This document shows, piece by piece, positions 28,794 to 32,907 of a stretch of DNA of 64,000 bases. Numbering within the stretch: the first letter of the stretch is position 1; each line of letters begins with the position of its first letter. Below the pieces are notes generated by a model. The model made no database searches. It had not been told where the DNA came from and saw only the letters and a list, made by a program, of their open reading frames with translations. The DNA comes from Chrysemys picta bellii (lineage: Eukaryota): positions 1,984,001 through 2,048,000 of the forward strand of contig NC_088794.1 in NCBI RefSeq assembly GCF_011386835.1. Reading direction: 5' to 3'. A program made the translations under genes and the position numbers.

Positions 28794-31700
28794 TTAACCC
28801 TTGCCATCCAGGGGGTCAGCGTAGACGGTGATTCTGCTGGGAGCTGAAGGAGAGGGAGAACGGAAAATGGGGTTAGGGACCCAGGAGTCCGGGCTGGTTC
28901 CCCCTGGGGCCCCCCCACCAGTGCAGGCCCCTTCGCTGCTCTCCCATTTCCGAACCCAGACATGAAGGGGGTGATGGGGAATAGCGGCAGATTCAGAGCA
29001 GCTCCCAGGGAAGAAGCCTGTGGAACTGCCGGCCACTGGGTGTTCTGCAGACTAGCCAGAGCATCCCCCCAGCCAGGGACCCCCGCAGAACCTCCCTGCA
29101 CTGGCCATGGGGCGCCAGGGACCCCCTTACCTTGACTGTGCAGCTTCCATATATGATCCCATGCTGGGGAGACAGAACGGGAGGGAGGTTAGACCAGAAG
29201 AGTCAAACCCAGGAGCCCTCCAGACACTAGGGGGTGGCACCCCCAAGTCTGATCAGCCCCCCGCCTCACCCTCAAACAGACACTGAGACCATAGAGCGAC
29301 ACACTTCAGCCCTCCCCTGCACCCAGGGGGCGCGCTGTCACCACGGTGCCCCCAACTCAGTGATTCTTGAAAGCCTAAAGGTAGATTGCTCCCCCCCCGA
29401 GCTCTGCCGGTGCCCCTCACTCTCGACCCACAGCCCCCTGCTAGCCTAGCCCAGCCCTGCCCCCCCCCCCAGCACTGCCAGTGCCCCTCACTCCCGACCC
29501 ACAGCCCCCTACCAGCCCAGCCCTGCCCCCCCCGCTCTGCCGGTGCCCCTCACTCCCGACCCGCAGCCCCTGCTAGCCCAGCCCTGCCCCCCCCCCAGCA
29601 CTGCCAGTGCCCCTCACTCCCGACCCACAGCCCCCTACCAGCCCAGCCCTGCCCCCCCCTGCTCTGCCGGTGCCCCTCACTCCCGACCCGCAGCCCCTGC
29701 TAGCCCATCCCTGCCCCCCCCGCTCTGCCGGTGCCCCTCACTCCCGACCCACAGCCCCCTACCAGCCCAGCCCTGCCCCCCCCTGCTCTGCCGGTGCCCC
29801 TCACTCCCGACCCGCAGCCCCTGCCAGCCCAGCCCAGCCCTGCCCCCCCCGCTCTGCCGGTGCCCCTCACTCCCGACCCGCAGCCCCCTACCAGCCCAGC
29901 CCTGCCCCCCCCCGCTCTGCCGGTGCCCCTCACTCCCGACCCACAGCCCCCTACCAGCCCAGCCCTGCCCCCCCCCCCCCCAGCTCTGCCGGTGCCCCAC
30001 ACTCCCGACCTGCAGCCCCGGCCAGCCCTGCCCCCCAGCCCTGCCGGTGCCCCTCACTCCCGACCCGCAGCCCCTGCCAGCCCAGCCCTCACCTTCCGCG
30101 TGATAGTCCCGTGCCTCCTCCCAGTCCTTGTGGCTCATCTGTTGCCAGCAGTCCCTGCTCTGGCCTGCAGTGGGTGCCGTTTGCTGCTGGCCGGCGCCCG
30201 GCTCGTTGATGAAGGACAGCCCCCACTGGTTCTGGAAGATGGCCCCCAGCTGGGGCTCGGCCGGCGGCGCGGGGGAGCCGTTGGGCAGGGGGCCGGCGGT
30301 GCGCAGGGCGGAGGCTGGCACACGGGCCGGCTGGCGCTCCAGGTTCTCCTTCAGCTTGCTGGCGTAGCTGATCTTGGGGAGGGTGCGGGCGCGGCTGCTG
30401 TCCACGGGGAACGCCGGCGGCGGGCGGAACAGGGCCCAAGGCTCCGGCGCCTTCTCGGCATCCTGCGGGGCGGGGCCGGTGCGCTCCGGGCTGCGGGGGG
30501 GCTCAGGGAAGGGGCGCCGGCGGCCGGCCCAGCCCCCCCGCCCCTCCCCGGGGCTGTGCCCATTGGCACTGGGCCCCCACTCCTTGGCCCCGGGGCGGTA
30601 GCTGCGGCGGTGGGCGGCATGGAAGGGCCGGGGGTGGGGGTGGTAGCGGTGGGGGTAGCGGTGGGTGGCGGGCGGCCCCGCCTCATGCTCTGACAGCTGC
30701 AGGTTGCGGATGTTGAGGGTGTTGGAGGGGCTCAGGGGGGCGCCCCCCTCCGCAGCCTCCGGGCCGTGGCCGTTGGACTCCCAGGTGCCTGCGGGGAACA
30801 GACGCGGGGTGAGCAGGACGCCTGGGTTCTCCCCGCTTCAGAGAACAACCCCTGTCCCTCCGTCCCCTAGCTTCCCACACGAGGCCAGGCCGCGGGCTGG
30901 GGCTGGGCACGGGGCACTTCCCGGCGTTACCACGTGCCCACCTCTGGGGCCCTGGACAGCGCTCAGCAGAACAGGCCTCTGGGCTGGCAGGAGAGGGGCA
31001 TGAGGGAAGGGGAGAGCGCCCCTCCACCCCCCCCCAGCGCCCCCTGCCCGTCCCTCCCCCCCATCTCCCCCCCATCCCGTCCCTCCTCTCCCCCCCAGCG
31101 CCCCCTGCCCTTTCCTCCTCTCCCCCCCAGCGCCCCCTGCCCTTTCCTCCTCTCCCCCCCAGCGCCCCCTGCCCTTTCCTCCCACCAGCTCTCCACAGTG
31201 CCACCTGCCCATCCCTCCCGCCCCCCGGGGCCCTGGTGCGCCCCCTGCCCCGCCCCTCACCGTGGCAGGGCGCCCCCTAGCTCTGTGCTGGGTGCCTGTT
31301 CAGCCTGCTGGCAGGGGGAGGGTTACAGAAGCCAAAGAAGCAGCTGGCTGCCAGCCCCCAAATCTCTGTAGCCACCATGTCCGCTTTAACAGATTGGGCT
31401 CACCTCCCTGCACCCCAAGATATCCTGGATACCCCCACCTGCTGTGCCTGGTCCTCGGGATGGTACCCCCGTCCTCCAGGGAGCACCCCTTACTCCTGCT
31501 GAGATGGGCAAGGCCAGTGCACATGAGCGCCCTATGGGGGGCCCCTTTTTTCGACAAGTACAGGGGATACAGGTGGGGGGAACACGGGGGGCTTAGAGGG
31601 GAGGAACGAGAGTGGATACAGGGAAGGGGAAGGGGAGCCTTGATGGAGGATACAGGGAGGGGGCACACGGGGCCCTCGGCGGTGCGGATACGGGCAGGGG

Positions 31701-32907
31701 GCACACAGGGGCTCAGCAGAGGAATATGGGGGGCTCGGCCATGGATACAGGCAGAAGGAATACGGGGGGCTCAACAGGGGCTTTAGGTGGGGGGAATATG
31801 GGGGCCTTGGCAGGGGGAAGATGCGGGGGCTCGGCAGTGGATACAGTTGGGGCACATGGGGGCTCAGCAGTGGATACAGGCATAGGGAATATGTGGGGCT
31901 CGGCAGGGAATTATGGGGGGCTCAGCAGGGGATACAGGCGGGGGGACATGTGGGGCTCATCAGGGAATTATGGGGGGCTCGGCAGGGGATACAGGCGGGG
32001 GGATATGTGGGGCTCGGCAGGGAATTATGGGGGGCTCGGCAGGGAATTATGGGGGGCTCGGCAGGGGATACAGGCGGGGGGATATGTGGGGCTCGGCAGG
32101 GAATTATGGGGGGCTCGGCAGGGGATACAGGCGGGGGGATATGTGGGGCTCGGCAGGGAATTCTGGGGGGGTCAGCAGGGGATACAGGCGGGGGGATATG
32201 TGGGGCTCGGCAGGGAATTATGGGGGGCTCGGCAGGGAATACAGGCGGGGGGATATGTGGGGCTCGGCAGGGAATTATGGGGGCTCGGCAGGGGATACAG
32301 GTGGGGGGATATGTGGGGCTCGGCAGGGAATTATGGGGGGCTCAGCAGGGGATACAGGTGGGGGGATATGTGGGGCTCGGCAGGGAATTCTGAGGGGCTC
32401 AGCAGGGGATACAGGTGGGGGGATATGTGGGGCTCGGCAGGGAATTATGGGGGGCTCGGCAGGGGATACAGGTGGGGGGATATGTGGGGCTCGGCAGGGA
32501 ATTCTGAGGGGCTCAGCAGGGGATACAGGCGGGGGGATATGTGGGGCTCGGCAGGGAATTCTGGGGGGGTCAGCAGGGGATACAGGCGGGGGGATATGTG
32601 GGGCTCGGCAGGGAATTATGGGGGGCTCGGCAGGGAATACAGGCGGGGGGATATGTGGGGCTCGGCAGGGAATTATGGGGGGCTCGGCAGGGGATACAGG
32701 TGGGGGGATATGTGGGGCTCGGCAGGGAATTCTGAGGGGCTCAGCAGGGGATACAGGCGGGGGCTCGGTGGAGTTACCTGCTGGGATGCGGTTGGTGAGG
32801 TTGTGCAGCTGCCCCTCGGGTCGGCACTTCTCCTTCTTCAGCCCCAACAGCCGCGGCTCTGGCTCGGGGTCGCGGTTCTCGTCTATACCCAGCTCCTCCT
32901 TCTGCAT
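28794..32907 (-). CDS. NUFIP2-like protein (~302 aa, 4 coding exons); probable NUFIP2 paralog
   Basis: Exons 32778-32907, 30093-30788, 29131-29163 and 28794-28843 are all phase 1 with GT/AG junctions and total 909 nt with no internal stop. Motifs: WALFRPPPAFPVDSSRARTLPKISYASKLKENL, LGAIFQNQWGLSFINEPGAG, 33-nt exon AWDHIWKLHSQ, and final APSRITVYADPLDGKG*. ATTAAA at 28505-28510. Confidence 0.85.
29400..30090. repeat. Dispersed minisatellite family (ctctgccggtgcccctcactcccgacccgcagcccctgccagcccagccc), copy in NUFIP2-like intron 2
   Basis: About 55-bp units starting at the exon 2 donor. Confidence 0.9.
31880..32765. repeat. ~57-bp minisatellite in NUFIP2-like intron 1
   Basis: Tandem ggggctcggcagggaattatggggggctcggcaggggatacaggcggggggatatgt. 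Confidence 0.92.

Follow-up and report, generated by a model that had tools for sequence, protein, structure and literature searches.

We analysed a 64,000-nucleotide stretch of the painted turtle genome (Chrysemys picta bellii, contig NC_088794.1, positions 1,984,001 to 2,048,000), referred to below as the window, which carries on its minus strand a four-exon gene whose product resembles NUFIP2. A first-pass annotation, made by a model from the letters alone, had placed this gene between TMEM219 and KCTD13, and Pfam matches on open reading frames (ORFs) of the window, together with colinearity with the annotated locus of Mauremys reevesii, bore out that position. The gene order in the window is TAOK-type (-), TMEM219 (-), NUFIP2-like (-) and KCTD13-type (+), and the M. 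reevesii orthologue likewise sits between a BTB_2 gene and the TMEM219 gene. With a probability of about 0.85, we consider the locus to be the painted-turtle copy of an ancient short paralogue of NUFIP2 (NUFIP2L), a duplicate that would predate the jawed vertebrates and whose product we propose to be a disordered adaptor of messenger ribonucleoprotein (mRNP) complexes.

Gene structure, transcripts and selection

When the four minus-strand exons were spliced at the annotated coordinates (Table 1), they gave 130 + 696 + 33 + 50 = 909 nt, that is 302 codons and a TAA stop. This reproduced the open frame of about 302 aa in four phase-1 coding exons that had been predicted, and the spliced protein contained every conserved peptide block quoted in the prediction, among them those of the 11-codon exon and of the short final exon. 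The donors are GTAACT, GTGAGG and GTAAGG, and all acceptors consist of a polypyrimidine tract ending in AG. Upstream of 32907 there is no in-frame ATG before a stop is reached. Exon 2 (231 aa) matched the Pfam family PF15293 (NUFIP2) at 86 bits (E 3.6e-24), against a cut-off of 27 bits; the exon set is far beyond chance, and we cite for this the exon 2 score alone.

Table 1. Coordinates of the NUFIP2-like gene, its conserved blocks and the other features of the window.
Feature	Position	Strand	Evidence and remarks
5' untranslated region (UTR), minimum extent	32908..33000	-	RNA contigs cover 32777-33000 and run at least ~40 nt beyond 33000
Coding exon 1, 130 nt, Met1 to first base of codon 44	32778..32907	-	Donor GTAACT; carries the L-specific motif MQKEELGIDENRDPE
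Intron 1, phase 1	30789..32777	-	RNA joint 30787/8-32777/8 in four runs; largely a 57-bp minisatellite (32026-32763, 13 copies)
Coding exon 2, 696 nt	30093..30788	-	Pfam NUFIP2 match; blocks A, B and beginning of block C; RNA contigs with 0 mismatches
Block A, aa 161-193, W-x-LF-R-PPP-x-FPVDSS...PKISYASKLKENL	30340..30438	-	Invariant alignment columns; most conserved module in common with NUFIP2
Block B, aa 224-243, LGAIFQNQWGLSFINEPGAG (core IFQNQWGLSFINEP)	30190..30249	-	Invariant N, W, G, L, F and I columns
Intron 2, phase 1	29164..30092	-	RNA joint 29163-30093 in four runs; mostly a 63-bp minisatellite (29448-30089, ~10 copies)
Coding exon 3, 33-nt micro-exon, (A)WDHIWKLHSQ(A)	29131..29163	-	Middle of the block C helix; splicing and RNA contigs
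Intron 3, phase 1	28844..29130	-	RNA joint 28843-29131 in four runs
Coding exon 4, 50 nt including stop TAA (28794-28796)	28794..28843	-	Ends ...PSRITVYADPLDGKG
3' UTR, minimum extent	28650..28793	-	RNA contigs cover 28650-28843 and extend ~150 nt below 28650
TMEM219 exon, downstream neighbour on the same strand as the NUFIP2-like gene	22336..23130	-	Pfam PF14940, E 3.4e-8; colinear with annotated Mauremys TMEM219
KCTD13-type BTB exons, upstream and divergent	39695..40393	+	Pfam BTB_2, E 1.9e-19; motif matches 39938-40258
TAOK-type kinase exons (N-terminal kinase domain), beyond TMEM219	8156..11860	-	Six-frame motif matches, ORF peptides, weak Pkinase match
Minisatellite between the NUFIP2-like gene and KCTD13	33116-33633		44-bp repeat (11.5 copies)
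Minisatellite between the NUFIP2-like gene and KCTD13	34164-35640		67-bp repeat (21 copies)
Further minisatellite stretch	44352-44933
Further minisatellite stretch	53520-54640
Further minisatellite stretch	63869-64000

Exon 2 was matched near-identically in 20 public runs from seven studies, and contigs of the same organism from four of these studies were aligned to 28650-33000. One contig per run (811-1323 nt) was recovered, confined to exons and UTRs, with 0-1 mismatches. Single contigs of 1204-1323 nt joined 28843 to 29131, 29163 to 30093 and 30787/8 to 32777/8, with ends CT..AC that read GT..AG on the minus strand, so that all three junctions put forward for checking (32778/30788, 30093/29163 and 29131/28843) were present in transcript contigs of four studies. 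Unique intron sequence was left uncovered by these contigs. Because they lack introns and have canonical splice ends, we treat them as derived from mRNA, the run type being recorded only as a guess. A Logan contig of 1180 nt from another turtle (L005), with a coding sequence 93.5% identical, aligned to the window in the same four blocks. The NUFIP2-like locus is therefore a genuine, transcribed gene that is spliced as predicted.

Two side observations concern the introns. The last bases of intron 1 (Mauremys locus 11482-11488; window ~30789-30797) translate in frame to P-A-G; because they code for the same P-A-G as the true exon 1/2 junction, tblastn and blastn overran the exon 2 acceptor by 6-9 nt, a small trap for automated exon mapping. 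The repeat family of intron 2 recurs three more times elsewhere in the window and also occupies this intron in Mauremys, and short contigs from other copies of this repeat pile up on it in RNA-type runs.

Pairwise ratios of nonsynonymous to synonymous substitution rates (dN/dS) were 0.13-0.29 against M. reevesii and 0.09-0.20 against the L005 turtle (ranges over methods). These values indicate purifying selection on the turtle gene, and the combination of missing splice junctions with a dN/dS near 1, which had been named in advance as grounds for dropping the gene, was not what we found: the junctions are present and dN/dS lies at 0.09-0.29.

The spliced protein of 302 aa is identical, letter for letter, to NCBI XP_065447175.1, "uncharacterized protein LOC122173326" (Chrysemys picta bellii). 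Full-text literature searches returned nothing on 'NUFIP2-like' or 'ch211-214j24.10', and there was no paper on a NUFIP2 paralogue among the matches listed. The gene is thus already in the databases under no meaningful name; it is an uncharacterized member of the known NUFIP2 family and not categorically new.

Protein modules and comparison with canonical NUFIP2

The proteins of the family share three modules, which follow one another in the order W-x-LF-[KR]-P-x-P-x-FPV...PKISYASK-[LV]-KENL (block A), LG-x-IFQN-x-WGLSFI (block B) and a C-terminal YH...IW-x-L...P-x-R-[IV]-x-x-Y (block C). Their columns were scored across 62 sequences, of the short type described below (L-type) and of canonical NUFIP2, and were invariant or near-invariant. 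Block C is predicted to be an amphipathic helix across the 33-nt micro-exon, an exon found at the homologous place in the Xenopus L gene and in canonical turtle NUFIP2. For structure prediction with AlphaFold2 we used the Mauremys orthologue (93% identical to the window protein, 97% to the L005 turtle protein) and the 62-sequence alignment. The model had a mean predicted local distance difference test (pLDDT) score of 55.8 and one confident element, a helix at residues 269-292 with pLDDT > 90. This helix, DWEEARDYHAE-AWDHIWKLHSQ, runs from the end of exon 2 through the micro-exon, and the remainder is predicted to be disordered.

Other motifs are specific to the short proteins. A DENxNP motif near the N-terminus occurs in L-type proteins only, from paddlefish to turtle, and LSPSNxLN is likewise L-specific; tetrapod L proteins further share a GKG C-terminus and a 50-nt last coding exon. 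The window protein carries all three motifs. The proposal that the gene outlines the minimal modules of NUFIP2 therefore holds for the three modules in common and falls short as regards the conserved N-terminal motifs DENxNP and LSPSNxLN, which the gene has of its own; having L-specific motifs beyond NUFIP2, it is more than a stripped-down NUFIP2.

The likeness to NUFIP2 (82-FIP, FMR1-interacting protein NUFIP2, PF15293) extends from the Pfam family and the order of modules A, B and C to the 3' layout of both paralogues (a large exon, the 33-nt micro-exon and a short terminal exon) and to a predicted mostly disordered state, which for the L protein comes from the AlphaFold2 model. In contrast to canonical NUFIP2, which measures about 630-700 aa and starts MEE.P...HHHH, the L protein has 302 aa and lacks both the His/Gln-rich N-terminus and the long Ser-rich linkers, in agreement with the description of a protein under half the length of NUFIP2 without such a tract. 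DENxNP, LSPSNxLN and the GKG C-terminus were missing from every canonical sequence checked. The neighbourhoods also differ: a probable TAOK2, TMEM219 and a KCTD13-type gene for the L gene, and the crystallin-gene (CRYBA1-type) side for the canonical gene.

The exon layout had been described as the same as in NUFIP2. The order of large, 33-nt and short last exons is indeed common to both, but the 3' introns are in phase 1 here and in phase 0 in the canonical gene. In canonical Chelonia NUFIP2 the large exon ends in YHTK followed by the donor gt, the 33-nt exon encodes EMESIWNLQKQ, the last coding exon has 54 nt, and both introns are in phase 0. The Xenopus tropicalis L gene, compared between genome and transcript, has exons of 130, 1005, 33 and 50 nt and three phase-1 introns, the same pattern as in the window. 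The 3' introns of the window gene and of the Xenopus L gene thus lie one nucleotide further 3' than the canonical ones, and on the sequences compared this 1-nt slide of both introns around the micro-exon is a mark of the L lineage.

With the si:ch211-214j24.10 orthogroup, so called after the zebrafish gene name that teleost members bear, the window gene has clade, motifs, exon sizes and phases in common, and it is itself one of these entries. NUFIP1 is an unrelated zinc-finger protein. It is tied to NUFIP2 by name only, via the FMRP interaction, and turned up in none of our sequence searches of the family; one preprint loosely says 'paralog'.

Distribution, age of the duplication and rival explanations

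Word-indexed searches and an exhaustive profile search of 1.84 billion representatives (E <= 1e-3) were carried out. The profile search found only 73 family members, and these were of two kinds: canonical NUFIP2 (about 600-700 aa, with a C-terminus ...DPKR..Y....DQ), which occurs in all jawed-vertebrate classes, and the short L type. L proteins were found among fishes in Cetorhinus, Mobula, Hemitrygon, Polyodon, Acipenser, Amia, Chanos, Salarias, Oryzias, Gadus, Protopterus and Latimeria, and among tetrapods in caecilians, Ambystoma, many frogs, squamates, turtles and Alligator. They measure 300-345 aa in turtles and squamates, about 405 aa in frogs, 455-540 aa in caecilians and salamanders, 508-537 aa in coelacanth and lungfish, 436 aa in paddlefish, 260-316 aa in bowfin and teleosts and 349 aa in the basking shark; the ray models, which are partial, have about 180 aa. 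A copy kept in the turtle's own lineage, as first supposed, is thus too narrow a description, since most jawed vertebrates other than birds and mammals retain the L gene, which already has database entries (LOC122173326, si:ch211-214j24.10).

No bird or mammal L-type protein was found in two protein-database searches, genomic DNA lying outside their scope. The L proteins of Alligator mississippiensis keep the DENRDPE motif, block B and the helix; they have lost the N-terminal half of exon 2 and the PKISYASK block (A), and their 3' end reads into unrelated sequence. Together with the bird result, the alligator sequences are consistent with decay of the gene in archosaurs.

The database names of these proteins vary. 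The Xenopus tropicalis gene is LOC100145486, and elsewhere entries are called 'NUFIP2-like' (amphibians, lungfish, Dermochelys) or 'uncharacterized LOC' (turtles, squamates). Misnomers driven by low complexity were also seen among L orthologues: 'translation initiation factor IF-2', 'formin-like protein 7', 'SH3 and multiple ankyrin repeat domains protein 1', 'zinc finger CCCH domain-containing protein 18', 'homeobox protein Hox-D11-like', 'predicted GPI-anchored protein 58' and 'splicing factor, proline- and glutamine-rich-like'. In addition, the models of Gopherus flavomarginatus, Platysternon and Caretta fuse the NUFIP2-like ORF with the downstream TMEM219 ORF; in the 546-aa fusion of G. 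flavomarginatus, exon 3 is joined straight to the first TMEM219 coding exon. These fusions reflect either read-through transcription or an annotation artefact, and because of them TMEM219 and NUFIP2-like proteins share 90% clusters.

Canonical NUFIP2 is a separate gene in turtles. It is present at full length in Natator, Caretta, Lepidochelys, Chelonia and Pelodiscus, and both paralogues were found, by source names, in Pelodiscus, Naja, Salvator, Ambystoma, Rhinatrema and Latimeria. Lepidochelys kempii has the L protein on a 135.7-Mb chromosome and NUFIP2 on a 28-Mb chromosome. In Chelonia mydas the canonical gene adjoins a beta/gamma-crystallin gene, with TAOK1 outside the 10-kb flank; we take this crystallin neighbour to match the CRYBA1-NUFIP2-TAOK1 order on human 17q11.2. 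The separate canonical copy that had been proposed as a check was therefore confirmed in other turtles, through the two genes of L. kempii and the crystallin-linked copy of Chelonia.

A careful tree was built in IQ-TREE from 49 rows and 370 columns under LG+C20 PMSF and rooted on a single hagfish sequence. The L clade had support of 100/100 on a long stem (0.86), and support of 100 in a quick tree. It comprised shark, ray, paddlefish, bowfin, teleosts, lungfish, coelacanth, amphibians, squamates, turtles and the degenerate alligator copy, and within it shark and ray-finned fishes, coelacanth and lungfish, amphibians, squamates and turtles followed approximately the order of the species tree. 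The window protein was sister to Mauremys within the turtle L sequences, and turtle canonical NUFIP2 (Natator) grouped with bird and mammal NUFIP2. Accordingly, the window protein does not fall inside a clade of NUFIP2 orthologues, the outcome that was to count against a duplicate, but in the separate L clade. Cartilaginous fishes are represented in both groups (Cetorhinus, Mobula and Hemitrygon for L; Scyliorhinus, Mobula and Callorhinchus for canonical NUFIP2), as are bony vertebrates, and the duplication is therefore older than crown gnathostomes.

On human gene maps the blocks at 17q11.2 (TAOK1/TNFAIP1/SEZ6) and 16p11.2 (TAOK2/KCTD13/SEZ6L2) would be paralogous; our data show the L side of this pairing, and on the canonical side the crystallin neighbour. 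The L orthologue of the boa Candoia has a BTB_2 gene 8 kb upstream, and in the basking shark the L gene adjoins a kinesin with an HHH domain (KIF22-like); this is the domain set of KIF22, a human 16p11.2 gene. The kinase next to the Amia L gene was considered as a TAOK2; tblastx against the TAOK exons of the window gave no match, and the identification is not claimed. We propose that the short paralogue arose when a NUFIP2-like gene was duplicated ahead of the last common ancestor shared by the jawed vertebrates, most probably within the whole-genome-duplication block from which TAOK1/TAOK2 and TNFAIP1/KCTD13 would also stem. In turtles the short paralogue would still lie within its TAOK2-TMEM219-KCTD13 block, and purifying selection would have kept it in cartilaginous and ray-finned fishes, lungfish, coelacanth, amphibians, squamates and turtles, with a degenerate copy in alligator. 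The suggestion of a duplicate from the second round of vertebrate genome duplication (2R) stands as far as a duplication before crown gnathostomes is concerned, as for an ohnologue of either the first (1R) or the second round.

Four other explanations of the locus were weighed. That it is the turtle's only NUFIP2 orthologue, moved into a 16p11.2-like block and shortened, would agree with its Pfam family and conserved blocks. We regard this chance as practically negligible, given full-length NUFIP2 in five turtle genera (the Chelonia copy by a crystallin gene on another scaffold), the two genes of L. kempii on different chromosomes and the position of the window protein in a distinct 100/100 clade; a translocated sole orthologue is refuted for turtles in general by the separate canonical gene. 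The long L stem, the nesting of L among canonical sequences in the tree and a protein far shorter than NUFIP2 might instead suggest a younger, fast-evolving duplicate, specific to reptiles or tetrapods, or a retrocopy. This is very unlikely: members from shark, ray, paddlefish, bowfin, teleost, lungfish and coelacanth stand in the L clade in roughly species-tree order, L-specific motifs and the phase-1 exon pattern are common from frog to turtle, and introns at positions homologous to those of NUFIP2 show that the gene is not a retrocopy.

Even less probable is the idea that the exons form only the 5' part of read-through TMEM219 transcripts, or are an artefact of annotation. The gene does share its strand with TMEM219, which begins about 5 kb further downstream, and the fused database models of G. 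flavomarginatus (546 aa), Platysternon and Caretta would fit such a view, but in four transcript contigs exon 4 contains a stop codon of its own and is followed by a 3' UTR of at least 290 nt, the stand-alone ORF with its GKG C-terminus is conserved from frogs to turtles, and a frog transcript is a complete intronless ORF without TMEM219. There is, last, only a very remote chance that the locus is decaying as a pseudogene, or is a relic that is transcribed yet has no function as a protein. The alligator orthologue (no block A, 3' read-through) and the lack of any bird or mammal copy in the protein databases searched could be thought to point that way; the intact frame with canonical splice sites, dN/dS well below 1, expression in four studies and motifs invariant over ~450 million years of divergence speak against it.

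Several points weigh against the ancient-ohnologue reading that we prefer. The hagfish-rooted maximum-likelihood tree nests L in a paraphyletic canonical group (88-91%), as sister to shark NUFIP2 (88/89). Forcing monophyly of the canonical sequences costs 2.9 log-likelihood units (approximately unbiased test, p = 0.23), so that monophyly is not rejected, and long-branch effects in the placement of L are likely. The topology is compatible with two sister ohnologue clades and is by itself no proof of a 2R origin. In the 10-kb flanks of the Chanos and Xenopus L genes there are no 16p11.2-type neighbours. The linkage of canonical NUFIP2 with TAOK1 and the 17q11.2/16p11.2 paralogon enter the argument as established knowledge, the apparent absence of L from birds and mammals comes from protein databases and not from genome scans, and the proposed function is drawn from resemblance within the family.

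Proposed role and other features of the window

Mammalian NUFIP2, the only member of the family with known partners, is a stress-granule and mRNP protein with FMRP, Roquin, G3BP1 and GABARAP as binding partners and with links to DDX6 and ATXN2L (PMC5775257, PMC9533235, bioRxiv 10.1101/2025.03.06.641895). Roquin binding requires NUFIP2 aa 255-411 (PMC5775257). Canonical proteins 630-680 aa in length have the start of block A at aa 272-335 (spanning ~275-345) and that of block B at aa 441-504, which puts block A inside the Roquin-binding fragment and block B outside it. By analogy, NUFIP2L would most likely be a disordered adaptor that acts in cytoplasmic complexes of the mRNP or stress-granule type, with blocks A-C docking partners of the kind that NUFIP2 binds. 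Without the His/Gln-rich low-complexity N-terminus, NUFIP2L may bind partners yet condense differently. It is conceivable, though unlikely, that NUFIP2L acts as a natural short competitor or modulator of NUFIP2 and tunes the assembly of FMRP, Roquin and G3BP granules, having retained the putative docking modules (the block within the Roquin-binding fragment and the C-terminal helix among them) but not the low-complexity region prone to condensation. Were that so, the decay in archosaurs and the absence from mammals would mark a rewiring of the pathway, and the gene would represent a difference in gene content in the block orthologous to the human 16p11.2 neurodevelopmental copy number variant (CNV) region.

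In the literature NUFIP2 is treated as a single-copy partner of FMRP, Roquin, G3BP1, DDX6 and ATXN2L. The sequences assembled here show a second, short member of the family in most non-mammalian jawed vertebrates, zebrafish and Xenopus included, and this paralogue may buffer the effect of knocking out nufip2 in fish or frog. Conservation over ~450 million years marks the three short modules and the helix as the likely functional core of NUFIP2. The TAOK2-TMEM219-KCTD13 segment, whose human orthologue forms part of the 16p11.2 CNV interval, would also gain a lost gene in its evolutionary record, and many misnamed or fused database entries for the short paralogue are flagged. Loss of ohnologues in mammals is common, and the history of the L gene should thus not greatly surprise specialists.

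Beyond TMEM219, the TAOK-type exons probably belong to TAOK2 rather than to TAOK1 or TAOK3, judging by their sequence, which resembles TAOK2 more than TAOK1, and by the neighbouring genes. Within this gene, at 8270-9700 on the minus strand, we observed many tandem copies of a unit whose translation ends in ...NSF[VM]GTPYW. The NSF[VM]GTPYW unit is the end of the exon for the kinase activation segment, and according to the ORF listing the array lies between two TAOK-type exons. GC-rich minisatellites occupy introns and intergenic space of the window, and a run of 500 N at 57675-58174 is either an assembly gap or a masked stretch.

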